Assembly: GCA_002269645.1 (NCBI GenBank)
Contig: NIVC01002307.1
Span: 62,001 to 126,000, forward strand
Source of the DNA: Macrostomum lignano
Lineage: Eukaryota
Reading direction: 5' to 3'
Length of the DNA stretch: 64,000 nt
The notes below the pieces were generated by a model. The model did no database searches. It was not told where the DNA came from and saw nothing but the letters and a program-made list of their open reading frames with translations. Both the position numbers and the translations under genes were made by a program. This document shows, in pieces, positions 1,274 to 55,900 of the stretch. The stretch's first letter is position 1. Every line of letters begins with the position of its first letter.

Positions 1274-2036
1274 GACGCATCTTTGACAGTGTTAATTAAT
1301 TGAATCGAGTTTGTGACTTCCAATCTTCCTCATTTGGGCTGAAATTTTTCATTGAGTTTTTAGTTCAACACCCATTTTCCATTCATGGTCGGAGCTGTTT
1401 CTGTAGCAGTTCCGATATTATGCTCGTGCAAGTAACTACTTGATCTGTATCAATAATGCTAGCGTATACACATATTGTGAGCTTTATCTCATAAAAATGG
1501 CAGCTATACTGCATAATGCTAGCAACAAAATAACACTGGGTTATCTTGTCGAGTCTTCATTCAAAACGACCATTTTAGCTGAACAGTTTGAAAATGTAGC
1601 TAGCGTTACAGCAAAGCTACATTCACTACATTTTGTATGTAACATTGTTTAAGTGGCTAATAGTAGACTTCTTAGTTATAGTCCTTGGTAACCCTCGATT
1701 GCATTTTCTGTTCGATGTAGAGACACCACCGTTTCAAAAAGTTACTTTCAATGAGTTGATTCAGTCTACAAATGCTTTAATCCAAAAATGCTTTTTTCGT
1801 TACTTGATTTCTCGTGTAAAACCATTGTAAAACTTGATTTCTTGTGTAAAACCATTGACCATTAACCCGATCGCAGCCAGGTTTCCCATGGAAAAAACGG
1901 GGTACAGAGTCCTTGAATCTTCGACTGACGCGGCTAATACATATTAACTTTGCCTTTAATTGAGTTTATTTTATCCATTATTTATCCTGACCTAAATCTT
2001 AATGTGCTTTCCTAGTAAATGTTCGTTCATTCTAGG

Positions 2037-2212
2037 AACAACAACAAAATACGCTGTTAGCGTCACAAGGCGCGTCTCAAGGCCAGCAGGTCACGGACGA
2101 ACGCCACGCCGCCAGCTGAATCTGGGGCGCCCGGGTCAGCTAGCAGGCAGTCGACGAATTAACGCTGAGTGCGGGCCTGCCCCCGCCGGTAGGTTGCCTG
2201 CAGGTCTGTCAG
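2037..2212 (-). mobile_element. RTE-clade LINE, 3' terminal fragment with (TTG)n tail
   Basis: Minus translation LTDLQATYRRGQARTQR*FVDCLLAD resembles the RTE C-terminal R-x-RGRP..TW.D.L..D region. It continues the frame QPVQEV broken at 4328. The tail reads aacaacaac at 2037-2045 on the + strand. Confidence 0.65.
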
Positions 2213-4327
2213 GACATCTTCGACGGCCTGGAACGCTCTCCACCGCACAGGAGCATCCTCGCGTGCATGGACTTCAAAGGAGCCTACGAAACGGTCTGGA
2301 AGGAAGGCCTCGTTGTGAAGATGACTCGAGTAAAGATCGACCAGAACACCATCGGCTGGACGGAAGCCTTCCTTTCCGACCGACGCGCAAGAGTCCGCTT
2401 CGGGCACACCCTGAGCCGCCAGCGCGTCTTCCGAGAGGGACTCCCACAAGGCTCGGTCCTGGCGCCAACTCTCTGGAACATCTACGTGAATGACCTAGAG
2501 GAGGCAGTCACGACAGCAGCGCCGGACTGCGGCATCAGCCTCTACGCCGATGATTCGGCTGTCCTCAGCACCCAAGCCCTCACTGGCGAGCTGCGGAGCC
2601 AGGATACAACCGGCACTCACTGAAAATCACCCTGAGTACCAGCAAGTGCAACTACTCAACATTCACGCTCGCCCCCAACGAGGTGAACGGCAAGCTCCGG
2701 GTCCCGCTCGAGCTAGCCGGCGAGCCACTCCAGTTTGAAGAACACCCGACCTTCCTGGGCCTCATCCTGGACTGCCAGCTGAACTTCGCCCAGCACGCAG
2801 CCAACGTCTGCCGCCGCATGAGCCGACGCCGACGCGCTCTTGCCGACCTCGCAAACCGCGCGGTAGGAGCCACCCAGGAGGTGCTCCGGACGGCCTACCA
2901 GGCAACCATCCGCGCCGTGGCCGAATACGGATGCGGAGTCTGGGGAGCCAGCGCGGCACCGAGTACCAAACTGCTTATCGAACAGCAACAGAACAGCTGC
3001 GCAAGAATCATCACCGGATGTATGCTCCCAACTCGAACCACGGAGCTGCTTCGGACGGCCAACCTCCCCCCCTTTGGCCACACCATCCTGGAACGCGCCG
3101 CCTGCCTCCGAGAACGGGTGCTGCGCCTCCCGGAGGACGTCCCAGCACACCGGACTGCGGCCAGAGACACCACCAGCAGACTACGAAACCGCGCCTACGA
3201 GAGCGCCCGCCGACAAGAAGAGGCAAATTTTAACGCGCTACTAGACAATGATTACAAGCGCCCTTTCCGCGGCTGCTGGCGGCGAATCGCGAGAGAAATC
3301 ACCGGTCCCTGCGGCCTCGAAGACCGGCCCAGAGAGCCGTTCCCGCCACCGCCGCCCGACCTGGCACACCTCGCGCTCAACCGGTACAGCCAGACTTTCG
3401 ACCTCACCCTCGCCGACGGCTGCGGCAGAGCAGTCCCGACGAGCGTCCGCCGCGACAGGGCGATGTCAGCTCTCGAGCAGCTAACACCCTGTGACATCGA
3501 CGCGTGGACGGACGGCAGCGTCAAGGAGGGCATCCACGACGCATGGGGTGCCGCGGTAATCTGCACCCGCCTCTGGTGCCAAAAGATCACCGCCCCGGCT
3601 GGCCGGATCGCATGCAGCTTCCAGGCGGAGATGGTCGCGATCAGCGCCGCCCTCGACTACATTACTCAACTCCCGCCAGAGCACGGCCTTACAGTGCGGA
3701 TCCTCAGCGACTCCAAATCAGCACTCACGGCCCTCCAGAGCGGCCCCAGTAGGCAGGTCACCGCCGCCGGAAGCCGCTGCTGGGAGGTACTGGCCCACAT
3801 GTCGCGCCCGTGCGACTTCGTCTGGGTCCCGGCCCACTGCGACGTCCCGGGCAACGAGCAAGCAGACCGCTGCGCCAACGAAGCTAGACGCGGCCAACAG
3901 CAGGACGAACCCATTACGCTGCAGGCCGCCAAGGCCGCCATCCGACGCGCGCGGTTCGCCCGCGACCAGGAACTGCTTGGACGCCCCTGGCAACGACCAC
4001 CACGACACCTGACCAGGAAAGAAACGGTGGCGATTAACCAACTCAGAGCCGGGTGCTCCACCCTGGCCGGGGCCACACGTCACCGGGTCGGCCTGACTGA
4101 GAACGCCAGCTGTCCCGATTGCGGGGCGCCCGACACGGAGGAGCATATCATCCTTGAATGCCCACGCGGCGACGCCCTTCGGGCGAGCACTGAGGACGAG
4201 AGGGACATCCGCGACGACCCGGAGCGCCTTCTCGCCCTCCTTCGCAGGTTGGGGCGCCTCTGAGCGCCCTCCCCCCAGCTGCCAGCGGCAGCGTTGTGGG
4301 GCGGTGGAAGAAAAGAAGAAGAAGAAG
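2213..4327 (+). mobile_element. 5'-truncated I-group (Ingi/Nimb/I-like) non-LTR retrotransposon: RT, RNase H and CCHC knuckle
   Basis: RT motifs MDFKGAYETVW, GLPQGSVLAPTLWNIY and YADD (2267-2623), then a deletion/frameshift. ORF 2683-4263 has RNase H motifs (WTDGS, QAEMVAI, LSDSKSAL, WVPAHCDVPGNEQAD) and CPDCG..DTEEHIILEC. A (GAA)n tail lies at ~4306-4327. Confidence 0.92.
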
Positions 4328-5520
4328 CACCTCCTGCACCGGCTGTGGGCAGTACGTCGATCGGCGCGGATGATATGGCCTGCAAGCTGGAGTCGCCGAC
4401 GGCGCAACAGGTTGCTTGGACTGACCACCGATACAATGCCGCGTTGGTCACTCGCTCGTAGCCGATCTTGAAGGCGGCGCGCAGCAGGCCAGCGTGCGCC
4501 GCGTCAACTTTTTGATCGAGCGAATCCACCAGCGTCCAGGTCTCGGCGTTGTACAACAGGACGGTCTCTATCACCGCCTGGAACAACGCCGCCCTCTGGC
4601 GGTCAGGTAGGGCCTCACAGAACGAAAGGCAGCCCAGGTAAGCCTGCGGCGACGCCGCAAATCCTCGCGGACACCAGGAACCAGACCGCCGATATAGACG
4701 AACTGCTGACAACGCGGAAGCTCTGTCGCCTGTTCATCAGCGCCTCGGGACAAAATCGCAGCCTCGATTCCTGTCCGACACGCAGAGCACAACGGTTTTC
4801 TGCGTGTCGACCACCAGGCCGACACTCGCCGCAACAGCAACTAGCTTGTCTAGTTGTCGCTGGGCGCCCTCGACAGTTGAGGACAGCAGGGCGAGATCGT
4901 CGGCGTAGCCAAGCACGCTGAGCCGCCTCTCCAGTTGACGTCGACCCACGCGTCGCCGCAACAGAAAGCCGTTGTCGTTGGTAAGAAAAGCAATCCGCAG
5001 CACCCAGTCAAGCACCAGAACGAACAGAAACGGCGCATGCGTGTCTCTCAGAAGCACCCTGGAGGATGTCTCAAAGAAGTCCGGTAGGCCGTCCAGTGTT
5101 GAAACAGCAGCTCTCGTATCACGGTATATCTCAATGATGGCGGAAATTAGCTGCTCTGGCACGTTGTACTTCTGGAAATCTATGAAGATAACAATCAGGA
5201 TTGATTGGCGTGTCCGCGCCTCTTCGATGACTCGGTGAAGAGCTAGAATCTGCGTCACTGTGCCGCGATGGAGCCGGAAGCCGTTCTGCTCAGGACGAAT
5301 CTGCACGAGACAGCGATTCCTTCCCGGAATCAGCGGGACTGCTTGTTCCGCGGCGGCTCGAACTGCAGCACCTCCGCGTACTCGGCACCTCCACGTTTGC
5401 CGCCGAGCATGAAAGCGCTGGCAAAAGCGGCTGTGCGTGTCGGCGTCTCTGAGCGCGCGGTAGTAGCGCTGCGGTGACCGCTTCGGCGGACGGTAGAGTG
5501 CCGGAAGGTCCGCCCGATAC
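4328..5520 (-). mobile_element. Degenerate RTE-clade LINE RT region (frameshifted)
   Basis: EQNGFRLHRGTVTQILAL, IFIDFQK, LGYADDLALL, VLLYNAETWTL and RRRLQLAGHIIR are spread over several frames. Confidence 0.88.
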
Positions 5521-6666: not shown

Positions 6667-7307
6667 CTACTCGAAAGCCTCCTTGTCGTACATAAACTCG
6701 CCCAGGCCGGTTCCGACCCGCTTCAGGTTGGTCACGTGATCGCCCAGCTCTTTGATGGCCTCAACCTGCTCCTGAAGGTATTCGGTCTCCAGGAAGTCGC
6801 ACATTTGCGGATCGCCATGGCTGTCAGCCACTTTGTGCAGGTCCAGCAGGCTCTGCGTGGTTGATAAAATTAGGACATGACGTCATAGTTTAAAGTAACT
6901 ACAGTATGTACTTTTAATATCTATATGAACGCTTCTATACTATGGTTATAGCTATAAAATAGAACCAGTATTTTTGCACATACCTGGTTAACCACCTTCT
7001 CCAGCTCAAGAGCGTCGGTGATAGCCTCAAGCATGCTGCCCCAAGTCTGCTTCACGGGCTTCTGGATGTCCTGAAGCACGATAGTGCCGCCGCGCATGTT
7101 CTGGTACTTCATCAGCTTCTCAGCGTGTTCGCGCTCCTCCTTGGAACTCTTGTTAAAGAATTCGGCGATGCCTTTCAGGGCAACGTCGTCGCGACTAAAG
7201 TGAAAGTACATTGCTTGGTAAGTGTACGAGGCGTACAGTTCCATGTTGATTTGCTTGTTGACTCCGGCCTCGCAGTTCTCGTGGTAGTTCTGGCGAACTC
7301 GGCTCAT
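6667..7307 (-). CDS. FTH1: Ferritin, H-type, 169 aa; join(6984..7307, 6667..6852)
   Basis: Exons join in phase 0 across a GT..AG intron. Ferroxidase residues are present: [31 protein letters not shown]. Ends [11 protein letters not shown]. Confidence 0.96.
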
Positions 7308-16224: not shown

Positions 16225-19200
16225 ATGGGTCGCAAGAAGATCAAGATTGTCCGAATCGAGGATGAGAGAAACCGACAGGTAATGGCAGAGTACTTTATTT
16301 AAATATACCTCATTCATTAAATTCCTCGGATTAGCTGTATCTCAGGCTAATAGAGTAGCTTCATTTCATGCTAATAGATTAGCTTCATTTCTATAGATAG
16401 CTTTCATTCGGCTAATAGATTAGCTTCATTTCAGGCTAATAGATTAGCTTCATTTCATGCTAATAGATTAGCTTCATTTCAGGCTAATAGATTAGCTTCA
16501 TTTCATGCTAATAGATTAGCTTCATTTCATGCTAATAGATTAGTTCATTTCAGTGCTAATAGATTAGCTTCATTTCATGCTAATAGATTAGCTTCATTTC
16601 AGTCACACAGGACCAGTTCACACTCACACAGGACCAGTTCACACTCCCACAGCACTAGTTCACACACAGGACCAATTCACACACACAGCACCAGTTCACA
16701 CTCACACGGCACTAGTTTACACTCCCACAGCACCAGTTCACACTCCCACAGCACTAGTTCACACACAGGACCAGTTCACACTCACACAGGACCAGTTCAC
16801 ACACACAGGACCAGTTCACACACACACACACAGGACCAGCTCACACTCACACAGGACCAGTTCTCACACACAGGACCAGTTCACACTCACACAGGACCAG
16901 TTCACACTCACACAGGACCAGTTCACACACAGGACCAGCTCACACACACAGGACCAGTTCACACTCACACAGGACCAGTTCACACTCACACAGGACCAAT
17001 TCACACACACAGGACCAGTTCACACTCAAACAGCACTAGTTCAGACACAGGACCAGTTCACTCACACAGGACCAGTTCACACACACACAGGACCAGTTCA
17101 CACTTACACAGTACTAGTTCACACACAGGACCAGTTCACACACACACACAGGACCAGTTCACACTCACACAGGACCAGTTCACACACACAGGACCAGTTC
17201 ACACTCACACAGGACCAGTTCACACTCACACAGCACTAGTTCAGACACAGGACCAGTTCACTCACACAGGACCAGTTCACACACACAGGACCAGTTCACA
17301 CTCACACAGAACCAGTTCACACACACAGGACCAGTTAACACACACAGGACCAGTTCACGCTCACACAGTCTAATAGAAGTAGCTTCATTTCATGCTAATA
17401 GATTAGCTTCATTTCAGGCTAATAGATTAGCTTAATTTCAGTCTAAAAGATTAGCTTCATTTCAGGCTAAAAGATTAGCTTCATTTCAGGCTAAAAGATT
17501 AGCTTCATTTCAGTCTAATAGATTAGCTTCATTTCAGTCTAATAGATTAGCTTCATTTCATGCTAATAGATTAGCTTCATTTCAGGCTAATAGATTAGCT
17601 TCATTTCAGTCTAATAGATTAGCTTCATTTCAGTCTAATAGATTAGCTTCATTTCAGTCTAAAAGATTAGCTTCATTTCAGGGCTAAAAGATTAGCTTCA
17701 TTTCAGTCTAATAGATTAGCTTCATTTCAGGCTAATAGATTAGCTTGATTTCAGGCTAATAGATTAGCTTCATTTCAGGCTAATAGATTAGCTTCATTTC
17801 ATGCTAAAAGATTAGCTTAATTTCAGTCTAAAAGATTAGCTTCATTTCAGGCTAAAAGATTAGCTTCATTTCAGGCTAATAGATTAGCTTCATTTCAGTC
17901 TAATAGATTAGCTTCATTTCATGCTAATAGATTAGCTTCATTTCAGGCTAATAGATTAGCTTCATTTCAGGCTAATAGATTAGCTTCATTTCAGGCTAAT
18001 AGATTAGCTTCATTTCAGTCTAATAGATTAGCTTCATTTCAGTCTAATAGATTAGCTTCATTTCAGGCTAATAGATTAGCTTCATTTCAGGCTAATAGAT
18101 TAGCTTCATTTCAGGCTAATAGATTAGCTTCATTTCAGTCTAATAGATTAGCTTCATTTCATGCTAATAGATTAGCTTAATTTTAGTCTAATAGATTAGC
18201 TTCATTGCATGCTAATAGATTAGCTTCATTTCAGGCTAATAGATTAGCTTAATTTCAGGCTAATAGATTAGCTTCATTTCAGGCTAATAGATTAGCTTCA
18301 TTTCAGGCTAATAGACTAGCTTCATTTCATGCTAATAGATTAGCTTCATTTCAGTCTAATAGATTAACTTCATTTCAGGCCAATAGATTAGCTTCATTTC
18401 AGGCTAATAGATTAGCTTCATTTCAGTCTAATAGATTAGCTTCATTTCAGGCTAATAGATTAGCTTCATTTCAGGCTAATAGATTAGCTTCATTTCAGTC
18501 TAATAGATTAGCTTCATTTCAGGCTAATAGACTAGCTTCATTTCAGGCTAATTGAGTAGCTTGATTTCAGGCTAATAGAGTAGCTTCATTTCAGTCTAAT
18601 AGATTAGTTTCATTTCAGGCTAATAGATTAGCTTCATTTCAGGCTAATAGATTAGCAGTCTTCATTTCATGGTTTATTACTCGCGCAAGGCCACTAGCTT
18701 CATTTCAGGCAGGTGACAGGCTTCACTTCAAAGCGCAGTTCATTTCAGGCTGATGAAGAAGCATTTCACGAACTGTCAGTACATGGCGACCGAAATCGCC
18801 CTAATTATTTTCAACACTCACAATCGGCTACCAGCTTCGCCTAGCACTGAGGACAAGGCTACAGGCTCCAAGTATTCACAGTACCAGCACTGATATGGAG
18901 TGCAACAACCGAGGAGCCACACGACTGCTCGACATTGTACACACAGGACCATTCACACCAGACCAGTTCACACTCGCACAGGACCAGTTTACACACACAA
19001 GACCAGTTCACACACAGGACCAGTTCATACACACAGGACCAGTTCACACTCACACAGGACCAGTTCACACACACAGGACCAGTTCACACTCACACAGGAC
19101 CAGTTCACACACACAGGACCAGTTCACACTCACACAGGACCAGTTCACACACACAGGACCAGTTTACACCCATTAGATTGTCATCCGCCTACCCTGCCCA

Positions 19201-22689: not shown

Positions 22690-24100
22690 GTGACAAGTCA
22701 GAGTCATTGCAAACAGCTCACTTGTGACTCTAGCGACTCTTTAACGACTCAAACAATCGTAATGCGGCGGTGAGGCAACTGTAGAGTCACGCGCATCACG
22801 TGAGTTGCAGAAGAGTCGCGAAAGATACACTCAGATACGCCTCAGATACACTCTACGGCGCCAGTCATTAAACTGGTTTCGTTTCGACAATAAAATGCCT
22901 CAAATTGATTCTTAGGCGACTTGTACCGTGACATCTCTTCGTTTTAGAGTCATTTCTTTCCTATTTTATCTGTTACCTGCAACGATACTGTGGCGACACA
23001 AGTGACTGGGACGCTTCTTGGCCAAGATACCGTTTCGTAGGGTTTTTACTTTTTGTAGTGTATCGGTTTGTACGAGCGTACTTTGATGATTGATGGAAAG
23101 TTTGGAAGGCCACGTTTGGCTGTGTCTTTAGCATCGTCCATGGCGGAACTTCTGCTGGCTAATAAAAACTTCCTCTCTTCCCCAACTTACACTTGGAGCA
23201 CACAAACTGTCATTGACAGATGAAAAATTTCGAACTCAGCAGGCAGACGTTGCCTTGCTCAAGCGAGCAGCACGTCGATTTTTAAAAACGTCTTTTGCTT
23301 GCTTCTTCTGCCTCTGTTATCAGTTTTTCTCTGGGGAAGCTCCTTCGTGGAGCAATGGGTAATGATGGCGATGAAAGCGGTACCTAGGCCCAGAAGCGTC
23401 TCAGAACAAAAAAATAGGAAAGAAGTGACTCTTAGAATTTGAGGCATTTTCTGCGACTCTGGGGCCGTAGTGTCGTATCTGAGGTTTTGCTTGAGTCACT
23501 GAGTTGCGTCCAAAGCGCATTTGCGTCACTTTATGAATTAGAATCGCATTCATAACAACTTTTCTTGAGTAATAATAAATTAATAATTGATTACACCTGC
23601 CCAATGGGCAGATGTGCAACCGACAGCTCAGCCGCAGCTATTGCGCGGCGCATCTGAAGGCTGCGTACGGCTGTTCAGTCCAAGGACTGGGGGGTCGCCA
23701 CACACACACCCTCAATTACCCCAGCTAATGCTGGCACCCATTTTACAGCTGGGTGAACTGAAGCAACGCAGAGTTAAGTGTCTTGCTCAAGGACACAAAT
23801 TGTTGCAGAGGGATCGGGAATCGAACCCCCGACCTTCAAGTCGTGAGTCCGACGCCCTAACCACTAGGCTACAACCCCCTCTCATGTTCTTGAGTTATTG
23901 TAGTAAAAATTTAGGCGTCAATACCCCTCTTGGACGAATTTTCTCGCGACTCTTACGATTCTAAAACTCACGTGACGCGCTCGTGACTCAACAGTTGCCT
24001 TTCCGTTACAATAAAGTCGTTTGAGTCGGAAAAAGTCACAAGAGTCCCCCCCCCCCAGAGTTGATACGCTCGTAGAGTCACTGAGTGACGTGTTTGCGAT
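22690..24100. mobile_element. Foldback-like element with long imperfect GAGTC/GACTC-rich inverted arms, interrupted by a SINE
   Basis: 22773-22822 is the inverted match of 23942-24000; 22835-22865 of 23455-23480; 22892-22906 of 23436-23450 (15/15). The order is collinear for inverted arms. Confidence 0.65.
23570..23880 (-). mobile_element. tRNA-derived CORE-like SINE (family A), copy 1
   Basis: Minus strand has A-box TAGCCTAGTGG, B-box GGTTCGATTCC, a CORE-like GTGTCCTTGAGCAAGACACTTAAC..CAGCTGTAAAATGGG and a (TTA)n tail. A close copy lies at 50993-51272. Confidence 0.9.
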
Positions 24101-24471: not shown

Positions 24472-27089
24472 TCAGTTACGATCGGTGGCAACCGCGCACA
24501 CGGCGCACAGCTGCAGAAACTCGTCGGCGCCATCAGTCAGGGCCCGGTCGGCCAGGCCGATCTGCTCCAACACCCGCGGCCTCACCTGGTCAGTCAGCAG
24601 GTGGTCGTGCAGCTGGTTGAGCACCTGCTCGCCTGAGTAGCCGTCTAGCAGCAGGTTGCGCACCGCCTCGGTGACTGCGTCAGTTCGGCGCTGGTCAAGG
24701 GCGCCAGTCAGGACGGCGAAACGGTCGGGCGGCACCGCGCCGGACATTTCGTGCACCAGGCCGACGGTGAGCTGCTGGCCCGGGCCGGCGTACCTGGCAA
24801 GGCGGGTTGGATGAGAAAATGCACGGTTTCGATTCGAATCGGGGGGGGAGCTGAGGTGGCGCCCACTGAAGAATCGGGGGGGAGCTGAGGTGGCGCCCAC
24901 TGAAGAATCGGGGGGGAGCTGAGATGGCGCCCACTGAAGAATCTGGGGGGATCTGAGGTGGCGCCCACTGAAGAATCGGGGGGGGAGCTGAGTTGGCGCC
25001 CACTGAAGAATCTGGGGGGGGGAGCTGAGATGGCGCCCACTGAAGAATCGGGGGGATCTGAGGTGGCGCCCACTGAAGAATCGGGGGGAGCTGAGGTGGC
25101 GCCCACTGAAGAATCGGGGGGGGGGAGCTGAGTTGGCGCCCACTGAAGAATCGGGGGGGGAGCTGAGATGGCGCCCACTGAAGAATCTGGGGGGGGGCTG
25201 AGGTGGCGCCCACTGAAGAATCGGGGGGGGGAGCTGAGATGGCGCCCACTGAAGAATCTGGGGGGGGGAGCTGAGGTGACGCCCACTGAAGAATCTGGGG
25301 GGGGAGCTGAGATGGCGCCCACTGAAGAATCGGGGGGGGGAGCTGAGATGGCGCCCACTGAAGAATTGGGGGGGGAGAACTGAGATGGCGCCCACTGAAG
25401 AATCGGGGGGGGAGCTGAGATGGCGCCCACTGAAGAATCGGGGGGGGGAGCTGAGATGGCGCCCACTGAAGAATTGGGGGGGGAGAACTGAGATGGCGCC
25501 CACTAAAGAATCGGGAGCTTAGATGGCGCCCACTGAAGAATCGGGGGGAGCTGAGGTGGCGCCCACTGAAGAATCGGGGGGGAGCTGAGATGGCGCCCAC
25601 TGAAGAATCGGGGGGGGGGAGCTGAGATGGCGCCCACTGAAGAATCGGGGGAGCTGAGGTGGCGCCCACTGAAGAATCGGGGGGGGGAGCTGAGATGGCG
25701 CCCACTGAAGAATCTGGGGGGGGGAGCTGAGGTGGCGCCCACTGAAGAATCTGGGGGGGAGCTGAGGTGGCGCCCACTGAAGAATCGGGGGGGGGAGCTG
25801 AGGTGGCGCACACTGAAGAATCTGGGGGGGGAGCTGAGGTGGCGCCCACTGAAGAATCGGGGGGGAGCTGAGGTGGCGCCCACTGAAGAATCTGGGGGGG
25901 GAGCTGAGGTGGCGCCCACTGAAGAATCGGGGGGGGGAGCTGAGGTGGCGCACACTGAAGAATCTGGGGGGGGAGCTGAGGTGGCGCCCACTGAAGAATC
26001 GGGGGGGAGCTGAGGTGGCGTTCTCTGAAGAATCGAGGGGCGGGGAGCTGAGGTGGCGCCCACTGAAGAATCGGGGGGGGGGAGCTGAGATGGCGCCCAC
26101 TGAAGAATCGGGGGGGAGCTGAGGTGGCGCCCACTGAAGAATCGGGGGGGAGCTGAGGTGGCGCCCTCTGAAGAATCGGGGGGGGGGGAGCTGAGGTGGC
26201 GTTCTCTGAAGAATCGAGGGGCGGGGAGCTGAGGTGGCGTTCTCTGAAGAATCAAGGGGGGAGCTGAGATGGCGCCCCCTGAAGAATCGGGGGGATCTGA
26301 GGTGGCCCAGCCTCACCTGGCAGCGCTGTGCAAATAAGTGAGCGCCTTGCGCAGGTCGCCGCCGCTGGCGTCAACCAAAGCCCGCAGAAACTCGTCGGTG
26401 GCGGTCAGCCGTTCGGCTGAGCAAATCTCGCCGACTCGTTTGAGCAGAGCAGCCTGCGGCAGCGGTTTAAATCTGAACTTGGCGCACCGGCTGCTAATGG
26501 GTGGGATGATTCTAGACACATAGTTGCAGATCAGGCAGAACCGGGTGGTCTTGGCGCACACTTCCATTGTGCGGCGGAGGGCTGACTGTGCCGCCGTGGT
26601 CATGTTGTCGGCCTCGTCTAGGATGATCAGCTTCAGCGGCGGGCACGCTTTGCCGCTGGGCGGGATAAGAGGGTTGGAGATAAGCCGCATAGGATACTAC
26701 TTACTGTGCAGCTATGAGTAGCATTTTATGAGTTTTTTAGGCGAAAAGAAAAATCGATAAAAGTCGACTCACTCCGGTCGTTTAGCGTTGGCGGTCAGCT
26801 GGGCGAAAGTTTTCACTTTGTCGCGAATGACGCCGATGCCGCGCTCGTCGGAGGCGTTCAGCTCCAATAGGCGATCGCGGAGCAGGTCCGGGCCGAACAG
26901 GTCTCTGGGGCATGGGTAGATGGATAGATAGATAAAAAGATAAATAGATAGATAGATAGATGGATAGATAGATAGATGGATACATAGATAGATGGATAGA
27001 TAGATAGATAGATAGATAGATAGGTAGATAGATACATAGATAGATAGATAGATGGATAGATAGATAGATAGATGGATAGATAGATAGAT

Positions 27090-27127
<38 letters not shown>

Positions 27128-27197
27128 GGATGGATAGATAGATAAAAAGATAGACAGATAAATAGATAGATATATAAATACATAGATAGACAGACAC

Positions 27198-27228
<31 letters not shown>

Positions 27229-27491
27229 CACAGACAGCAGTCCCACCTGGCCAGGGCCAGGGCGGCGGAGGTCTTGCCGGTGCCGGGGCTGCCGTAGAAC
27301 AGCAGGTTTGGCAGGTCGGCTCCCTCGGCCGCGCACTTCTTCAGCACCGCCACCGCCTCCTCCTGGTGCGACACCTCGTCCAGAGTGGCTGGCCGGTACT
27401 TCTCCACCCAGGGCGTCGGACGTTTGGTCGACGACGCCGAGCGAGGCTTTGCGTCCGATTTGGAGGCGGCGAAGTTGAGCAGAAAGTTCTC
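24472..27491 (-). CDS. RFC4: Replication factor C subunit 4; exons 27247..27491, 26773..26904, 26317..26655, 24472..24793 (345 codons, no own ATG)
   Basis: PWVEKYRP, Walker [27 protein letters not shown], Walker B LIILDEAD and SRC motif. All junction phases match (2/2/2). Confidence 0.95.
24838..26308. repeat. ~31-38 bp minisatellite (G)nAGCTGAGRTGGCGCCCACTGAAGAATC in RFC4 intron 3
   Basis: About 40 direct copies with variable G-runs fill nearly the whole intron. Confidence 0.97.
26915..27236. repeat. (AGAT)n/(AGAC)n microsatellite in RFC4 intron 1
   Basis: Seen directly in the sequence. Confidence 0.97.
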
Positions 27492-27532
27492 CTGCAACCG
27501 AATAGTTTGCGAAAGGATCCAGAGTATTAGAA

Positions 27533-28372
27533 ACAACAGACCCCATCTATTAGACAGGCAATGGACTAACAGACCCCATCTATTAGACAGGAAATAGACT
27601 ACAAGACCCCATCTATTAGACAGGCAATGGACTAACAGACCCCATCTATTAGACAGGCAATGGACTAACAGACCCCATCTATTAGACAGGCAATGAACTA
27701 ACAGACCCCATCTATTAGACAGGCAATGAACTAACAGACCCCATCTATTAGACAGGCAATGAACTAACAGACCCCATCTATTAGACAGGCAATGAACTAA
27801 CAGACCCCATCTATTAGACAGGCAATGGACTAACAGACCCCATCTATTAGACAGGAAATAGACTACCAGACCCCATCTATTAGACAGGAAATAGACTAGC
27901 AGATCCCATCTATTAGACAGGAAATAGACTAGCAGATCCCATCTATTAGACAGGAAATAGACTACAAGACCCCATCTATTAGACAGACAATGGACTAACA
28001 GACCCCATCTATTAGACAGACAATGGACTAACAGACCCCATCTATTAGACAGACAATGAACTAACAGACCCCATCTATTAGACAGGCAATGGACTAACAG
28101 ACCCCATCTATTAGACAGGCAATGAACTAACAGACCCCATCTATTAGACAGGAAATAGACTACCAGACCCCATCTATTAGACAGGAAATAGACTAGCAGA
28201 CCCCATCTATTAGACAGGAAATAGACTACCAGACCCCATCTATTAGACAGGAAATAGACTAGCAGATCCCATCTATTAGACAGGAAGTAGACTAGCAGAT
28301 CCCATCTATTAGACAGGAAATAGACTACCAGACCCCATCTATTAGACAGGAAATAGACTAGCAGACCCTATC
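27533..28372. repeat. 33-bp minisatellite CCCCATCTATTAGACAGG(C/A)AAT(G/A)GACTA(A)CAGA upstream of RFC4
   Basis: About 25 copies with period 33. Confidence 0.96.
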
Positions 28373-28954
28373 TACTGGACTAGAAAATCATGACTTATCT
28401 ATTCGTGCAAAAATAATTTAATATCGAAGTCGCACAGCATAACATATATAAATATTGAATAGAATTAGTGACTTCGAATATAGCAATCGGGTGCCTCACA
28501 AAATTATTGGCATAACAGGAATTTTTGAATCAGTTAAATACGGTTTAATGACGTCACGAATTTTCTAATTTCAAATCAATAAACGAATTTCAGAAAAAAT
28601 TAAACTTTTAGAAGAGCTAACTAAACTAATAGAGTGGGAGCTATTTAGTGGCGAATAATGTAAGGGGCGCTGATTGTGAAAATGATAAAAGTAAAAAGAC
28701 AAATCGAACAAGGACGCGAATTTAGCAAGATTTAATTTAAAAATTACCGGAATTGTCAACAAATGAAAGATTTTTTGATTTTTATAGATGATTAAAATAC
28801 AAGCTTACTCACGGGTCACAATTGATTTCTTATAATAATAATGACTATTTACGGCAATAGGAGTTTTACGAGAGTAAGAGAGGATTATAGTTCATTAAAA
28901 CTGAATGGGAATCGAATGGGAACAAAAAATCAAATCGAAATTAAATGTCAAAAA

Positions 28955-29125
28955 GGGTCAAAGGTCACACAGGGTCAGGGGTCAAAGAAGATCAAAGGAA
29001 GACCAAACAAGCCCAAAGGTCAAACGTGGTCGAATTTCAAACAAGGTCAAAGGTCAAGCGAAGACCAAATGGCAAAATGGCGAAAAAATCAAACGAGACC
29101 AAAGGTCAAAGGTCAAACAAGGTCA
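28955..29125 (+). promoter_or_regulatory. Cluster of AGGTCA half-sites including three DR1 elements
   Basis: RGGTCA-A-AGGTCA at 28955-67, 29044-56 and 29103-15, plus single half-sites. Function is unproven. Confidence 0.3.
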
Positions 29126-29149
29126 CTTTACGCTAGCTAGGCCAGCCAA

Positions 29150-31779
29150 TCAAATCTGGCCGACCTCGTGCAGGTAGGCGGCCATCAGCTTAGTACCCTG
29201 GATGTAATTCCTCTTGGACAGTTTCTCATTCTGGCTGTGAGCTCCGTCGTCAGCTTGGCCCATGGGCAGCAGCAGCACATTCTTGCCCGTGCTCTCCTGC
29301 AGGCTAAGCGTCACCGGGATGCTGCCACCCTCCCTAGTCATGTCCGGCTCAACTCCGTACACAGTTTTCGTAGCCTTGGCGGCGGCCTGAAAGTGCGGAT
29401 GCTGGAAATCGCTGAACCAGTGCCGGCCCCCATGCTGAGGAATGATGCGGCACTGGTTGGGGCTGCCCCGCTCCCGGAACAGCCGTTCGCAATAGGCCAC
29501 CACTTTGGCGTTGACCTCATCCGGCGTCTGGTTGGGCACGATTCGAATGCTGAACTTGCCAATCACTCGGCGGGGTATCACCGTCTTGGCGCCTTCGCCG
29601 TAGAAAGCGCCCTCGATGCCGTGGACGCTGAGCGAGGGGAAACGCCAGCGGTGCTGCAGCGTCTTGGCCTGGAAATTGAAAGGCGTGGCGAATGAACTCT
29701 AGAGCGGCTTACTTATGGCGGGAGGCGGCGCCCACTGAAGACTCTGAGGAGGTGGCGCCCACTGAAGACTCTGAGGAGGTGGCGCCCACTGAAGACTCTG
29801 AGGAGGTGGCGCCCACTGAAGTCTTTTTGGGAGGTGGTGCCCACTGAAGACTCTGACGAGGTGGCGCGCACTGAAGACTCTGACAAGGTGGCGCCCACTG
29901 AAGACTCTGAGGAGGTGGCGCCCACTGAAGGCTTGGAGGTGGCGCCCACTGAAGGCTTGGAGGTGGCGCCCACTGAAGGCTTGGAGGTGGCGCCCACCAA
30001 AGGCTTGGAGGTGGCGCCCACCAAAGGCTTGGAGGTGGCGCCCACTGAAGACCCGGTGGGAGGAGATGACGACTGGGTAAGCCAGTTAGGGGCTATAACT
30101 CGATGAAGACCCCCTACTCACCTTAGAAGCGTGCAGCAGGCCGTGGAGGCCATTGTCAGCCTTGAACTCATCAACACTGAAGTCCATCTTATCGTAGAGA
30201 GCCTCCTCCTCAGGGGCGATTCTTAATGGATGATTGAGGGGGCGATTCTTAATTGAGGGGGCGATTCTTAATTGAGGGGGCGATTCTTAATTGAGGGGGC
30301 GATTCTTAATTGAGGGGGCGATTCTTGGTGGATGATTGAGGGGCGATTCTTGGTGGATGATTGAGGGGCGATTCTTAATGGATGATTGAGGGTCGATTAT
30401 TAATGGATGATTGAGGGGGCGATTCTTGGTGGATGATTTAGGGGGCGATTCTTAATGGATGATTGAGGGTCGATTATTAATGGATGATTGAGAGGGGCGA
30501 TTTTAATGGATGATTGAGGGGCGATTCTTAATGGATGATTGAGGGGCGATTATTAATGGATGATTGAGGGGCGATTCTTTGGGGATGCTCAAGGGGGCAC
30601 TTAGGCGATTATGAGTTGAAAGGCGATTTTCAGGTAACGCTTGAGGGCGATTCACAGAAGAATTGATCAATTGACGATTATACGAAAATACAAAATTTCC
30701 GACTTCACTCTCAACTCAAAGGGGGGGGGCATTTTTAAATCGCTAACACTAAAAAGCGAACCTCTTTGTAAGCCTCGACGGCATTGAGCCAGCCCAGCAC
30801 TGGCCCCTTGTCGTCGCTGGAGCCTCGGCCGTAGAGGTTCCCATTGCGCTCGGTGAGCTCGAACGGCTCAGTGTCCCAGCCGTCCTCTTTGGCAGCCGGT
30901 TGAACGTCCAGATGGCCGTAGATGAGCAACGTCTTCTTCTTGTCGCTGTTGGCGTTGCTGGGCAGATCCGCCAGTAGGCAGGGCGGCAGCTGCAGCTTGG
31001 TGCCGTCCGTTAGTTTCTAGGAATGGATACAAGTTGTAGAAAACTCAGATTTGAACTCCTTTGTAGCTAATCAGATTATCTTCACTTTAACTTATCGATT
31101 CCACCAGTTTCACGATTCTAAACTCCGGATTTCCCGATCCTAAACCCCGAATTTCCCGATCCTAAACCCCGAGTTTCCCGATCCTAAACCCCGAATTTCC
31201 CGATCCTAAACCCCGAATTTCCCGATCCTAAACCCCGAGTTTCCCGATCCTAAACTCCGGATTTCCCGATCCTAAACCCCGAATTTCCCGATCCTAAACC
31301 CCGAATTTCCCGATCCTAAACCCCGAATTTCCCGATCCTAAACCCCGAGTTTCCCGATCCTAAACTCCGAGTTTCCCGATCCTAAACCCCGAGTTTCCCG
31401 ATCCTAAACCCCGAATTTCCCGATCCTAAACTCCGGATTCCCCGATTCTTAACTCCGGATTCCCCGATTCCAAACTCTGGATCCCCGATTCGAAACTCCG
31501 AATCCCCGAATTCCAAACTCCGGATTCCCCAATTCCAAACTCCGGGGGAACTTTAACCTTGCCGCTTACCTGTTCGCCCAAAGGCGCCAATCGAACGGAG
31601 GCGCCCAGCGACTTCAGCTCATCAGCGGCCCGTTCCACCATGCGAACAACTTCGCCGCGATGATCTGGCCAGGCGCTGACTGACCTGACAGCGACAGCGT
31701 CGCGCAGTCGGTCGATGTAGCGCGACTGGTTGGCGTCGATGCGGCTGAATATGCGCTGCAGGTCGGCGTTAGCTGACAT
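29150..31779 (-). CDS. CNDP2: Cytosolic non-specific dipeptidase (M20); exons 31570..31779, 30762..31016, partial 30122..~30217, 29150..29668; about 110 central codons absent
   Basis: [48 protein letters not shown] and [10 protein letters not shown] are present. The EGMEE/ISDNY/DLHSG region was not found. Confidence 0.88.
29722..30052. repeat. 24-30 bp minisatellite GAGGTGGCGCCCACTGAAG(ACTCTGAG/GCTTG) in the last CNDP2 intron
   Basis: About 12 copies; the core is shared with the RFC4 intron 3 array. Confidence 0.93.
30212..30600. repeat. Minisatellite GAGGGGCGATTCTTAAT(GGATGATT) in a CNDP2 intron
   Basis: About 15 degenerate copies abut the truncated exon. Confidence 0.9.
31120..31545. repeat. 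22-bp minisatellite CCCGATCCTAAACCCCGAATTT in CNDP2 intron 1
   Basis: Period 22; degenerates toward 31545. Confidence 0.95.
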
Positions 31780-32502
31780 TTTGATAACGGAATTGAAGCA
31801 TGCATGCAGTTGTGCCGGGTGTCGGGCTTCTATAGGATTAGTAAGCATGTGTTTGATGTGACGGATAGCGAGAGAAAAGAGAATTACGCCCTAATGATGC
31901 TTGGAGACTATTTTTTGGGTGCATACTATCTAATTGGTTTTCTTTAGATTCGCTTTTTGATAACCATAATGTCAGAGAAATTTACATTAGCAAAATTTAA
32001 TAGAAAAAATACAGAACATCTAAGTGAAGTCAACATATTCCCCTTCGTTATGCGAAATTCAAAGTGAAAAAACGTAGAGACTTTTTTCGTATGGACAAAA
32101 ACGTATGGACAAACGTCAGCACAACTAGGCTTAAGAGGGACTGAGGGAATAATCCAAGAGTCAATAGCTAGCCCAGGCTTGAATGAAGAAAACTGTCTGT
32201 AGTCACACAGGATACATGTAGGTAGGATTAGTTCTGACCTGAGCGGATTAAGACGCGAGCAATAGAAGCAAATCCAGCAACAGCTGGTAGGATAGGCTGT
32301 TTTCTCGGACCCACGTGGCGAGTAACACAACAAGCCCCGATGAGCAGCAGCGATGATGTGGCAAGATTACAAGCTCTAGACCAAAATAGCATAAATAGGA
32401 CTGTACCACCGAGCCGAAAACATCCTACAACTCAAACACTCAAACGGTATATTGTCTCCGAGTGGAAAATACTAAGAATTCAATCAACATCCAGTCGATA
32501 CC

Positions 32503-38100: not shown

Positions 38101-39717
38101 AGCAATCAAATTATAAATAGATTAATAGAAAACAGATTTAATAAAATGCAAGCACACTAAATCCGAACTCAGTGCTCTTAGGCCATCTCTAAAAGATCGT
38201 TCGTGACTAATCCTTTTGGACAGGATTTTATATCTAGCTACAATATTCAAAGCCAAAAGCACACTTACTGAATAGGGTAATCCCGTTTAAAGATTGAGCT
38301 AGCGCTATTCTGCTCATCATTGGCGGCCGTCTCGGCGCAATCCTTCTCTGCTACCTCCTCTAGCCGCTGTTTCGCCTGTCCGCTATCCCACAGTGTGGAG
38401 TTGGTGAACTCCTGGGCATAGCCGGGCAGGCGGGAACAGGTGCCAGCTTCCGGCGCTTCTTCCCGCGTTGCGGACGCGGACAGGCAATCATTGGCGCCGT
38501 TGGACCTGGCTATGGCCTGGTGCACCAGCACGGGCTTGTCGTTGCACGGTACAACCTTTGAGCCTGTGCTAAGAGTAGTCAGATAGCTTGGCACCTTGTC
38601 TAACACGTTAGCAGATGTGCAGCTGGACTCAGCGGAGGCTTGATTGCCATTGCCAGCAAGGCGTTCAGCAAGGCGTTCATTGCCAGCCGAGGCGCGAACA
38701 TTCTTACTCGAAGAAGAAGTTCTCTTCTTCTTTCGCGAGTTGCTAGGAAGCGTTGAGGAAGATGAGGAGGAGGAGGCGGTTAGCGGTTGTTGCTGCTTGT
38801 TTGAGGAAGGCCTGCGCCGCTTTGCCGGCGGCTCTTTGAAGCTCAAAAACGTTGATGAAGCCGGACGGGAGTCTGCAACAAACATTGCTTCATCTTCCGC
38901 CTGAAGCGATGGCGGCGTCGAATCCACCGCCGACTCGGTCGGACCGTCGTCAAGGACGAAATCTCCGGGGAAGAGCTCCGGATGCGTGGGCGGATCCCAC
39001 ATGGTGTCTAGGTCTAAAATGTTGTTTTCAGCTAAGAGATTAAGATCAATCTCTGTTAATGTATTGAGGCAATAAGCAGTTGTCAAACGCGGCTTGCCCC
39101 TTAAGTAACTTAATTACATAGCAAATCTTTGATGCCAAAACAGAGATGCATCAACACAGGCTGAAGGCTCATGTAAAGAAAATGTGCTCAATTTTTATGC
39201 TGATGTTCAAGCGTGCTTAATCAGAAAAATTCTTAGTACTGGAGAATTCTTACTTCTATTTAACTTAGATGGATCTGGTCAGGGAAGTTAGCCAGCCAGA
39301 GGTTTGTCTATAAATAATTTTGAGAAGCTATTGCATATACTATAAACTAGTGATTGTTTTTTTATAAATTAAACTTGCTTCCTAAACTAGTGTCCATTCA
39401 GACTTTACTATACACGTTAGTTAGCAAATTTCTGGCAGGCAAATTCTGGCTGGTTAACAACTGACTAACTAACATTTCTATCCTTAATGGTGCAATGTTG
39501 AGCCCTGAGTCTTTTGGCTAAAAAGCTCATTAAAAAACCCCGAATAGGTTGATTGCTTACCACAAGACACTATTCCATCAGTGCATTGCCTGTCAATCAA
39601 ATTAATTGGACAACCAATTGTTGATTGATCAAACAATACATTTGGCAACAGATCTTGACTGCCGTGACTACTACTGCTGTGGCTACTGCTGCTGCCACTA
39701 TGGTGATCGAAATTCAT
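35114..39717 (-). CDS. PGC-1/spargel-like coactivator with C-terminal RRM, 487 aa; exons 39561..39717, 38269..39052, 36840..37057, 36354..36443, 35114..35328
   Basis: All four junctions are phase-compatible (1, 2, 1, 1). The RRM reads QQRRILFIG..DSYAFVYF..DAYAA..GFGGRWQY..YTDLDS, with terminal DFGSLLK. This parallels the PGC-1 family RRVIYVG..DSYGFITY..DAFAA..FCGRKQF..YADLDS..DFDSLLK. Confidence 0.8.
35535..35965. repeat. 81-bp higher-order repeat of ~20-bp (CTGCGGCGCTAAAATCTCTC-like) subunits
   Basis: ggcgcaaaaa recurs at 35651 and 35732 (period 81); about 4-5 units in the last PGC-1-like intron. Confidence 0.9.
36545..36800. repeat. 44-bp minisatellite GGAATGGAGCAGATCCTTCAGGTGGAATGGGGGGAATTCTATGC
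   Basis: About 5-6 copies. Confidence 0.92.
37186..38062. repeat. 31-bp minisatellite CACAGTGGAGTGGATACAAGCACACCAAAGA
   Basis: About 27 near-identical copies; they explain the six long ORFs here. Confidence 0.98.
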
Positions 39718-40554
39718 CTGAAATTGGTCAATTTAGTATAGAAATAAAATGGGGAAATTCATTTTTTGCATAGCTAGTAATTGGTAACAGCATGCAATCA
39801 TAAATAAAACCATTTGCTAAAATATTTGGATTTGCAACCTAGTTGATGAAAACTTGTAATTTGCCTCCAAATTTTTCTAATAGGTTTTAAAATGATTTGT
39901 CTAACATTAGCTAAAGCACATTGCTAAAATATTTAAAGTATTTTCTCTCCATGGACAAATTTTCTAACATTATGTAATACATGGTATACATAGTCAATTT
40001 CTAGATTCCTACAATCTGGTTTGCAGAATTTTTCTGTCCAACATCAGTTGTGCAAAAAGTGCAAACAGTTTTGCACATTTGTCAGCACTATTGATTTACT
40101 ATATTTCAATTTTTCCTTATCCACTTGAAACCAATTTAGCTTCACATTGTACCAACCAATACAATGCAGTTGGTATTGTGTGCAGCAATCTTGTTTGCAC
40201 ATGTAGAAATCATTATTAAGTCCAGCAATCAATTTAGTTATTATTTCTGATCGAACAGTGCAAGTCTCATGAAAATCGGTCCAGCCATTTTTTCTCTAAT
40301 CGATTGCGTACAAACAAACAAACAAGCAAGATTTTCATTTTTAGTATATTGGATATGATGTAATTCATACCTTTAAAACTTAATGACTACCATTGCTGGC
40401 ATGTTGTAGCATTCAATGGATTCAAGGGTTGCATTCAATGGACTTAGCACTTTCTATGATCTATTCAACTCATATCTCAAAATGGCTATGTTACTCAATA
40501 GTCACTACTTTATTTTGCACTGAAAATTTACTCTTATGATTTAATATGGCTGAG

Positions 40555-52813: not shown

Positions 52814-52928
52814 TGTAGCCTAGCTTTTCGTTAATGGAAGTTTAATATTCAATAACTTCAAATCATCAAATCGAATCAAACTACGAGTAAAGTTTTCCAA
52901 ACATCACATTGCATGTCAAGATTAACTA

Positions 52929-55900
52929 ATGGACGATATTCATCGCAATGCCCTGCTGAAGGCTCGCTGCGTGCTGGTCAGTCAGCTGGTAGCGGACAAT
53001 AAGCTTTGGGGCCTGCTACTAGAGAGAAAGGTGTTCACCAAGCCAATGCTGGAGCGAATCCTCGGCCAAGGAACTCCGCACGAGCGACGCCAACAACTGA
53101 TGGACGACCTGCCTAGACGCGGTCCGGACGCATTCGGCCAGTTTCTGGGCATCCTTCGCGACACCAGACAGCAGGACCTGGCGGACTATCTTGACGGCAT
53201 GGACCGGCACCTCAGGCACGGCCATCCGCTGCCGTCGGAGCCGCGGCCGCAGCCCAGACCGCCATCGGGGCCGAGTCAGCCAGCGCAGCCATCGCAGCCG
53301 CAGGATGATCCGTCTCGAAGGCCGTCAGTCGACCGTTCAGTCAGTCGAATAGGCGTGACCAACCAACCCAACATCCCCGATGACGTTCTGTCTGTACAGG
53401 AGGTAAGACGTTACTTAGCTGCCTACTGTATTATGTTATTTGCCTTTAGTTTATTCGTACTCACCAAGGGGGAGGGGGATTCTCTGGTGTCATCTGTTGA
53501 AGGTGCCGACGGCGTCGGGGTGATGACAGAATGCTTGAGAGACTAGATGAGAATGTCCAGCAGTTGAGGTTTGCCCACTGTCGAGGCTTGATCAGTGACA
53601 TCAGGGTGTTCATAGTCACCTGGTGCCAGCTGTTGAAGGTCCAGAAGCTCCGCCTGGGTGAAGACCAGCGACCAGTGAAGTCAGAGCTGAGTCAGGCACA
53701 TGTGGTCGACGTGCTGATGAACTTTGGAGGCTTGGCAAGGCTGCACTGAGGCACAGGGGTGTACTGAATACACTGGCGCTTATGGAAAAATTCGACCTTC
53801 TGGCAGAATCGTCGAATATCTCGACGGACCGGAGGGCTGGCGACTTGATTCTTGTTTAATAAGAGGGTGCGCAACAAAATAGTTTTCTGTGCCTGCGTTG
53901 CTTCGTTTCGGCGCAGCAAAAAATTGTCTGCTGTTAACATTTCACATTGAATCCTGAATCCTCTGCAGGTACTGGAACACCATGAGGATGGCCTGGAAGA
54001 GTTGAACTTTCACACCTGCGGCATCATTGACAGTACTGAGCTGATGCCTCAACCGGTGACGCAGCAGCACCTGACGGAGAAGAGCAAGAATGATTGGGAA
54101 TTCACATACCAGCTCCGCTCCAATCCGAAGGGTCTGCTGCTCATCATTAGCAATCGAGATTTCGTTAAGAAGAGTAAACGAACCGGAACGGAAGTCGACT
54201 GCGAGAACCTGACTCGCGTGTTCAAGAACCTTGGCTATGAGCTCTATAGGAACCAGGTTTTTAATGACAAAACGGCCGCAGAGATGAAGAGTCTCTGTCG
54301 CGAGTAAGTTTCGAAAACAGTTAAAGTTAAAAAAAACTGCAAAGTGATGACACGTTTAACACGATAGAAGTCGCGCTTAACCTTCATCTCACTCGCAGTT
54401 TCATCTTGGACCCCAGACACGAAAGCCTGGACTCCTGTGTTTTGTGCATTCTCTCTCACGGCGATCAAGGCGGTGTGATCTACGGCAGAGATGACCTCCC
54501 GGCGACCGAGGACGAGCTGTTCGAGCACTTCAACAGCGACCGATGCAAGCTGCACAACAAGCCCAAGCTGGTCATTATCCAGGCCTGCCGCGGCTCCATG
54601 AAAGACAAAGGCCACATTTTTGATCAAGTGAGCTGGCTGCTCGTCCAAGTTCGAGCGTTATTTATCCGAAATTACAGATTCAGTTCTGCAGCATATCAAC
54701 CTCAAGTGCTCCATCAGCATTTAAATCTCAAGTTGCTCCATCAGCATCTGACCTCATGTTGCTCCATCAGCATCTGACTTCAAGTTGCTCCATCAGCATT
54801 TAAACCTCATGTTGCTCCATCAACATCTGACTTCAAGTTGCTCCATCAGCATTTAAACCTCAAGTTGCTCCATCAGCATTTAAACCTCATGTTGCTCCAT
54901 CAGCATTTAACCCTCAAGTTGCTCCATCAGCATCTGATCTCAAGTTGCTCCATCAGCATCTGATCTCAAGTTGCTCCATCAGCATCTGACCTGCAGTATC
55001 CATTAGAAACCTATGTTTTAACCTTCAGCATTCATTAGAAACCTGTGTTCTAACCTGCAGCATCCATTAGAAACCTGTGTTCTAACCTGCAGCATCCATT
55101 AGAAACCTGTGTTCTAACCTGCAGCATCCATTAGAAACCTGTGTTCTAACCTGCAGCATCCATTAGAAACCTGTGTTCTAACCTGCAGCATCCATTAGAA
55201 ACCTGTGTTCTAACCTGCAGCATCCATTAGAAACCTGTGTTCTAACCTGCAGCATCCATTAGAAACCTGTGTTCTAACCTGCAGCATCCATTAGAAACCT
55301 GTGTTCTAACCTGCAGCATCCATTAGAAACCTGTGTTCTAACCTGCAGCATCCATTAGAAACCTGTGCTCTAACCTGCAGCATCCATTAGAAACCTGTGT
55401 TCTAACCTGCAGCATCCATTAGAAACCTGTGCTCTAACCTGCAGCATCCATTAGAAACCTGTGCTCTAACCTGCAGCATCCATTAGAAACCTGTGCTCTA
55501 ACCTGCAGCATCCATTAGAAACCTGTGTTCTAACCTGCAGCATCCATTAGAAACCTGTGCTCTAACCTGCAGCATCCATTAGAAACCTGTGCTCTAACCT
55601 GCAGCATCCATTAGAAACCTGTGTTCTAACCTGCAGCATTTATTAGAAACCTGTGTTCTAACCTGCAGCATCCATTAGAAACCTGTGCTCTAACCTGCAG
55701 CATCCATTAGAAACCTGTGCTCTAACCTGCAGCATCCATTAGAAACCTGTGTTTTGTCAAGCCTAAAAGCATCCCCTACTGTTCCAGACTGACTCGGCAT
55801 CGGGAGATAAAACAGACCAAACAACTGTTCAGAAGATTATCCACAGCCTGCAGGAGGAAAACTACAGCGACACGATGGACTTGGAGAAGCGAGTGCCTCT

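Follow-up and report, generated by a model that had tools for sequence, protein, structure and literature searches.

The start codon of RFC4 in the flatworm Macrostomum lignano is very probably supplied by a trans-spliced leader

Analysis of a 64,000-nucleotide stretch of the Macrostomum lignano genome (the window; bases 62001–126000 of record NIVC01002307.1, assembly GCA_002269645.1, Mlig_3_7) indicates that the start codon of RFC4 is very probably supplied by the AUG of the trans-spliced leader (SL). Coordinates are window positions throughout, and both RFC4 and its upstream neighbor CNDP2 lie on the minus strand. An earlier note on this DNA had proposed that RFC4 depends on trans-splicing for its start codon. 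This dependence is supported by the match in reading frame between leader and gene and by a published annotation in which the RFC4 transcript carries the flag TRANSSPLICED, with initiation at the leader AUG argued from precedent and homology.

The M. lignano SL is 35 nt long, CGGTCTCTTACTGCGAAGACTCAATTTATTGCATG, and has a terminal ATG; its 3' end is ...AATTTATTGCATG (PMC8629364). The last 8 nt are ATTGCATG, and a longer stretch of the 3' end is ...CAATTTATTGCATG. The acceptor motif for trans-splicing in this species is [T/C]TNCAG, and the donor consensus is GT[AG]AG (PMC8629364).

The spliced RFC4 model matched M. lignano protein entries at 100% identity. Three loci were reached through the GenBank proteins PAA59009.1, PAA70783.1, and PAA84688.1: L001 (NIVC01002307.1), which is the window (L001 position 8001 corresponds to window position 27488, minus strand), and two paralogous or homeologous copies of the RFC4 locus, L002 (NIVC01001207.1) and L003 (NIVC01000364.1). 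Such copies are expected in M. lignano, which is a hidden polyploid. In the window, the RFC4 model consists of four exons with AG/GT at every internal border, and these exons encode 345 residues, that is, PAA59009.1 with one additional N-terminal Glu. The parts of the model are as follows (a slash marks a splice junction).

27492..27497, minus strand: trans-splice acceptor TTGCAG, abutting exon 1 on its 5' side, fitting [T/C]TNCAG and conserved in L003; L002 has TGCATG
27489..27491, minus strand: GAG, first codon of exon 1, whose AG is a possible second acceptor 3 nt downstream (tandem CAG-GAG); the SL AUG would still be in frame, giving MNFLL
27247..27491, minus strand: exon 1, opening with codon 2 (GAG, Glu); ENFLL...PWVEKYRP...GSPGTGKT (Walker A); donor CCAG/gtggga
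26773..26904, minus strand: exon 2, borders ccccag/AGAC and CGGA/gtgagt; its translation agrees with PAA59009.1
26317..26655, minus strand: exon 3, with Walker B (DEAD), the first in-frame Met (residue 144 in exon-encoded numbering), and the SRC motif
24472..24793, minus strand: exon 4, with the Rep_fac_C domain and the TGA stop

The first exon begins at an acceptor, as the earlier note had it: TTGCAG at 27497..27492 is followed directly by GAGAACTTTCTG (27491..27480, minus strand), which opens exon 1 with GAG AAC TTT CTG. Exon 1 lacks an ATG in all frames. The earliest ATG of the spliced RFC4 mRNA in any frame is the in-frame codon 144, which lies downstream of Walker A (exon-encoded residues 67–74), and a protein started there would therefore be dead. 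Upstream of the acceptor, the RFC4 frame is open as far as a TAG at 28370 and holds no ATG and no GTG; only the TTG at 27536 resembles a start, in agreement with the earlier reading that TTG is the only in-frame upstream start. The nearest in-frame upstream ATG, at 28391, does end after three codons, as had been claimed, and the other in-frame upstream ATGs, at 28445 and 28895, run into stops within 16 and 9 codons, respectively. No genomic AUG can yield a functional RFC4. The features of the upstream region are these.

28380..28391, minus strand: nearest in-frame upstream ATG (ATG ATT TTC TAG), a dead end
27498..29149, minus strand: outron and intergenic region from the CNDP2 stop to the RFC4 acceptor; 1658 nt including the 6-nt acceptor, 650 nt without tandem repeats
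27535..28374, minus strand: 33-bp minisatellite of 25.5 copies within the outron, with one out-of-frame gene-strand ATG per unit

The 1658-nt region upstream of 27491 contains 30 gene-strand ATGs, 26 of them in a single out-of-frame register, and the majority of the out-of-frame upstream ATGs fall within the minisatellite. It could be argued that the transcript begins with a short cis-spliced 5' exon that carries a genomic ATG, such as ATGGGGTCT/GTTAGT in this minisatellite, which would yield MGS-ENFL. The intergenic region does hold 40 candidates of the form "ATG ... phase-0 GT," 13 of which are ATGGGGTCT/GTTAGT. However, none of the 40 has the species donor GT[AG]AG, which upholds the earlier claim that no ATG-bearing donor exon is found up to the CNDP2 stop. 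The candidates are also units of a repeat that differs from one paralogue to another, the RNA-seq–based annotation stops the transcript at the acceptor (flag TRANSSPLICED, coding sequence 5'-partial), and an MGS extension would disrupt a conserved MxxFL start. A cis-spliced exon of this kind is very unlikely.

Initiation at a non-AUG codon would use either the in-frame TTG at 27536, if the transcript stayed unspliced, or a near-cognate codon within exon 1, and appears extremely unlikely. The open frame to 28370 would permit it, with the TTG standing 15 codons upstream, but up to 26 out-of-frame ATGs would precede that TTG on an unspliced 5' leader, and the reported trans-splicing of RFC4 removes it. 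After trans-splicing, an in-frame AUG precedes all near-cognate codons.

That AUG is the one at the end of the SL. When the SL is joined at 27491, its AUG (nt 33–35) precedes every other AUG of the mRNA and is in frame with RFC4 with no stop between, producing a 346-residue open reading frame (ORF) that begins MENFLLNF... and of which the genome supplies residues 2–346 only. The agreement of this MENFL with the MxxFL start of RFC4 orthologues, pointed out previously, holds in a comparison of N termini: 104 of the 116 full-length orthologues in our hit list begin M..FL, most of them as MQAFL; the variants include MDAFL (a sponge) and MHAFL or MEAFL (molluscs). The position of the acceptor thus matches the end of the ancestral Met codon precisely, and its coincidence with the boundary between codons 1 and 2 of the conserved start is more than chance. 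In an RNA-seq–based annotation, the RFC4 homologue Mlig028746.g1/g5/g6 is flagged TRANSSPLICED and "Neoblast, stringent," with a transcript of 1283 nt (Grudniewska et al. 2018, PMC5816591 supplement). The stretch from acceptor to stop accounts for 1038 nt of this length and the 3' untranslated region (UTR) for ~245 nt, so that a 5' exon of appreciable size would not fit.

We propose that the RFC4 pre-mRNA would start either from its own promoter or as read-through from CNDP2 and would carry an outron rich in out-of-frame AUGs. The spliceosome would then attach the 35-nt SL at TTGCAG/GAG (27491), discarding the outron together with its AUGs. In addition to a leader and a cap, this step would place the terminal AUG of the SL before GAG AAC UUU CUG, where it would be the only usable AUG and would open the 346-codon frame for complete RFC4.

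By its sequence, the protein is identified as an orthologue of RFC4, a small subunit of the AAA+ clamp loader, rather than RFC2, RFC3, or RFC5. The Pfam domains AAA, DNA_pol3_delta2, RCF1-5-like_lid, and Rep_fac_C each score above their own cut-offs. Counting the SL Met as residue 1, GSPGTGKT occupies residues 68–75, DEAD residues 140–143, and the arginine-finger motif SRC residues 182–184. In a search of the PDB, human RFC4 was matched with E = 6e-109 and yeast Rfc2 with 1e-87, and the remaining subunits with 1e-61 or weaker. Yeast Rfc2 is the orthologue of human RFC4. The named matches from outside Macrostomum that we checked in the databases are all annotated as RFC4. Compared with metazoan RFC4 (human, PDB 6vvo_D and 7z6h_D; yeast Rfc2), the M. 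lignano protein shares domains, motifs, and the MxxFL N terminus, and it is 54–57% identical to vertebrate RFC4 over nearly the full length. Metazoan RFC4 starts with a Met that, in the full-length orthologues, is taken to be genome-encoded, whereas M. lignano has the CAG of an acceptor at the position of the Met codon, which is contributed instead by a different RNA.

The gene is crowded by tandem repeats. Intron 3 is filled by a 36-bp minisatellite of 41.7 copies (24836–26306) and intron 1 by (TAGA)n and (AGAC)n (26917–27237). The repeat lengths vary among the three paralogous RFC4 loci; the exons are almost identical.

Existing annotations of RFC4 lack a start. In GenBank, the coding sequence (CDS) of all three copies (PAA59009.1, PAA70783.1, and PAA84688.1) is 5'-partial and opens with AAC, 3 nt into exon 1. 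The six UniProt models, taken to derive from the earlier ML2 assembly, begin LQENFL or ENFL, and none has a Met. In two of them, A0A1I8FY93 and A0A1I8GJG3, "LQ" precedes ENFLL; these two residues are the translation of the six outron bases TTGCAG, which are similar to the SL tail TTGCATG. SL-bearing transcripts aligned into the outron may be behind this LQ.

Several points weigh against the SL AUG as the start codon or against 27491 as the exact junction. The junction nucleotide is inferred from the acceptor motif, from the 5' ends of annotations, and from SL traces in the assembly (see below), and initiation by the ribosome at the SL AUG in M. lignano would rest on schistosome precedent and N-terminal homology. 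The GenBank RFC4 CDS begins at 27488 instead of 27491, an offset of 3 nt. The second AG, 3 nt downstream, is usable as an alternative and would give MNFLL. The context of the SL AUG is weak, with U at −3 (though G at +4). A protein collection searched with the SL-translated prefix plus exon 1 for a transcript-derived N terminus gave no Macrostomum match. Finally, the SL AUG would fall outside the CNDP2 frame and start an upstream ORF (uORF) of 10 codons on that mRNA; thus, it is neither an obligatory nor a fully efficient start on every mRNA.

The offset may have a simple origin. The partial CDS of CNDP2 opens 1 nt past its predicted junction, and the RFC4 and CNDP2 offsets would both fit annotated transcripts that begin one base past the acceptor and were then trimmed to the first whole codon. 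If the SL were joined mainly at the second AG instead, the exon would begin at AAC (27488) with AACTTTCTG, and the dependence on the SL AUG would be unchanged. The tandem CAG-GAG, with both acceptors in frame, and the GenBank start at AAC in three of three copies are in keeping with this use of the second AG, which we nevertheless judge decidedly unlikely. CAGGAG misfits [T/C]TNCAG, whereas TTGCAG fits; M-NFL disrupts the M..FL spacing of 104 of the 116 orthologues; and one UniProt model begins ENFLL. In addition, the chimeric sequence of L002, TGCATG/GAGAAC, has SL bases before GAGAAC and not before AAC.

This L002 sequence bears on both the junction and the start codon. L002 and the window are identical over the 55 nt before the RFC4 junction and over the whole of exon 1, except that TTGCAG is replaced by TGCATG, the deposited L002 assembly at this junction being cggtGCATGGAGAAC. 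The four altered bases are exactly those that would result from an ungapped overlay of the SL 3' end (...TTGCATG) on the genome. A graded replacement is found at the CNDP2 junction of the three copies.

L003, 3100–3105: ttgcag/CTTCAA, no SL bases
L002, 1136–1141: ttgATG/CTTCAA, two SL bases
L001 (window), 31799..31804, minus strand: tGCATG/CTTCAA, four SL bases; first exon base 31798, own ATG 31779

The assembly was polished by Pilon with Illumina shotgun reads and STAR-mapped RNA-seq (Wudarski et al. 2017, PMC5730564). Polishing of this kind, taken together with the graded SL bases, implies that, in reads carrying the SL, the leader directly precedes GAGAAC in RFC4 and CTTCAA in CNDP2. SL-bearing RNA-seq reads probably overwrote the last 2–4 outron bases at three of the six junctions examined, as a polishing artefact, and the apparent genomic ATG in L002 RFC4 is probably not real.

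Were that ATG genuine, with TGCATG/GAG in the L002 genome as the deposited assembly reads, the RFC4 family would not depend strictly on the SL AUG. This reading is very improbable. The four changed bases are the exact SL bases and destroy the acceptor AG, and other copies show the 2- and 4-base replacements at the CNDP2 junction in an assembly polished with RNA-seq. GenBank, moreover, annotates the L002 copy as 5'-partial, and the six UniProt models are without Met, either reading through TTG CAG or starting ENFLL. The L002 variant is not a retrocopy, as all three introns are kept. There is likewise only a very slim chance that the TGCATG and TTGATG variants are real alleles, in which the SL 3' end was written into the genome, for instance through short-patch repair with SL-bearing complementary DNA (cDNA) as the template. 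If they were real, one RFC4 homeologue would have gained its own ATG, and there would be a mechanism for gain and loss of SL-AUG dependence. When runs of multi-base mismatches between paralogues were counted from BLAST alignments, minisatellites dominated the tally.

Other occurrences of the SL-tail 8-mer ATTGCATG were considered as SL traces, with about two expected by chance in the window. The match at 39798 (minus strand) is due to chance, being present in both paralogues with the true acceptor of the gene 73 nt downstream, and so is the match at 18204 (plus strand), which lies inside a tandem repeat. At 52908–52931 (plus strand), a further match precedes the ATG of a CARD-caspase gene by 13 nt and could be either an SL polishing trace or a chance match. 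A search with exon 1 of this gene for paralogous loci returned none that passed the threshold. The ORFs of the gene are as follows.

52929–53546, plus strand: CARD ORF of the CARD-caspase gene
54406–54777, plus strand: caspase-domain ORF of the same gene

The use of an SL AUG as initiator has precedent among flatworms. Every reported flatworm SL ends in AUG (PMC12582326), and the M. lignano SL conforms, with a published remark that its terminal ATG is likely to be a start codon (PMC10468722); the general premise of the earlier note, that flatworm SLs end in an AUG usable as initiator, is thereby sustained. In Schistosoma mansoni, according to the accounts in two later papers, the SL AUG can initiate translation, and over 40 cDNAs depend on it (Cheng et al. 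2006, J Biol Chem 281:733, as cited in PMC9851317 and PMC12582326). The M. lignano case resembles these mRNAs, as described there, in that the SL AUG is in frame, the recipient has no suitable AUG of its own, and a conserved N terminus is restored. It differs in that S. mansoni is a parasitic neodermatan for which initiation was shown experimentally, whereas M. lignano is a free-living macrostomorph for which initiation is inferred. RFC4 was not seen in those portions of the schistosome SL-AUG gene lists that were accessible, and neither RFC4 in other flatworms nor Smp_096360 is among the entries listed in the accessible parts of the supplements of PMC12582326 and PMC5832876.

For Echinococcus granulosus, SL cDNAs have been described in which the SL AUG is needed for the full conserved N terminus (PMC3510090). 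There, as here, an in-frame SL ATG was argued from the N termini of orthologues; that work used SL-containing expressed sequence tags, whereas the M. lignano case is built on genomic sequence and the published TRANSSPLICED flag. RFC4 also resembles the slORFs of nematodes, Oikopleura, and trypanosomes (slORFfinder, PMC9851317), in which a leader-donated start codon defines the ORF. The slORFs, however, mostly use near-cognate codons (e.g. UUG) and are new or alternative ORFs (PMC9851317), whereas M. lignano RFC4 has a canonical AUG and a canonical conserved protein. We found no paper that names RFC4 or lists SL-AUG–dependent genes in M. lignano. RFC4 is a new, clean example of a known flatworm mechanism and not a new mechanism.

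This dependence has practical consequences. With the SL AUG added, the three "partial" GenBank RFC4 entries and the UniProt entries that lack a Met probably represent complete proteins, and annotation pipelines for M. lignano need to place the SL ATG in front of the sequence at trans-splice sites. In RFC4-based reporters, the acceptor must stay or an ATG must be added. Mlig_3_7 appears to hold SL-derived bases at some acceptors, with false ATGs introduced and AG acceptors erased, which matters for work on 5' ends and splice motifs. Translation of the neoblast-enriched RFC4 would be strictly coupled to trans-splicing, and this coupling agrees with reports that, in M. lignano, conserved genes and stem-cell genes are enriched for trans-splicing. 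RFC3 (Mlig002688.g2 and Mlig030012.g2), located outside the window, is likewise flagged TRANSSPLICED and neoblast-enriched (PMC5816591 supplement).

The gene upstream of RFC4 raises the question of an operon.

29150..29581, minus strand: last coding exon and stop of the CNDP2-like gene (Peptidase_M20), upstream of RFC4 on the same strand

Gene pairs in M. lignano have been assigned to operons when both genes are on the same strand, both are trans-spliced, and the repeat-adjusted intergenic distance is below 1 kb (PMC8629364). CNDP2 and RFC4 have these properties: both are on the minus strand, they lie 1658 nt apart (650 nt without repeats), and the CNDP2 junction carries SL traces. RFC4 is in the neoblast-stringent list, and CNDP2 is not among the entries listed (PMC5816591 supplement), which argues weakly against a shared promoter.

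CNDP2 has a 19-nt 5' UTR after its trans-splice site, and the uORF opened there by the SL AUG (31770–31798, minus strand) overlaps the ATG that belongs to the gene, at 31779. On this mRNA, ribosomes must accordingly bypass the SL AUG or reinitiate after it. At 39717–39723 (minus strand), the CDS of an RRM-domain gene directly follows the acceptor, TTTCAG/ATG, in both paralogues. Trans-splicing at this site, if it occurs, would set the genomic AUG directly after the SL AUG and in the same frame (MMNFDHH...).

The window holds no SL RNA gene, as judged by the lack of an ungapped match of at least 22 of 35 positions to the SL and by Rfam matches to tRNA only. ARAGORN and Rfam (tRNA, 37 bits) identify a tRNA-Val(CAC)-like sequence at 23805–23880 (minus strand), ~600 nt downstream of the RFC4 stop, which may be either a tRNA gene or a repeat derived from one. 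Retrotransposon fragments occupy both strands of window positions 2000–5300, a GC-rich section (57–64%), and include an RNase H ORF on the plus strand (2683–4263) and a reverse-transcriptase ORF on the minus strand (4737–5306). A ferritin exon at 6921–7307 (minus strand; Pfam Ferritin, E = 5e-25) has an ordinary genomic ATG.

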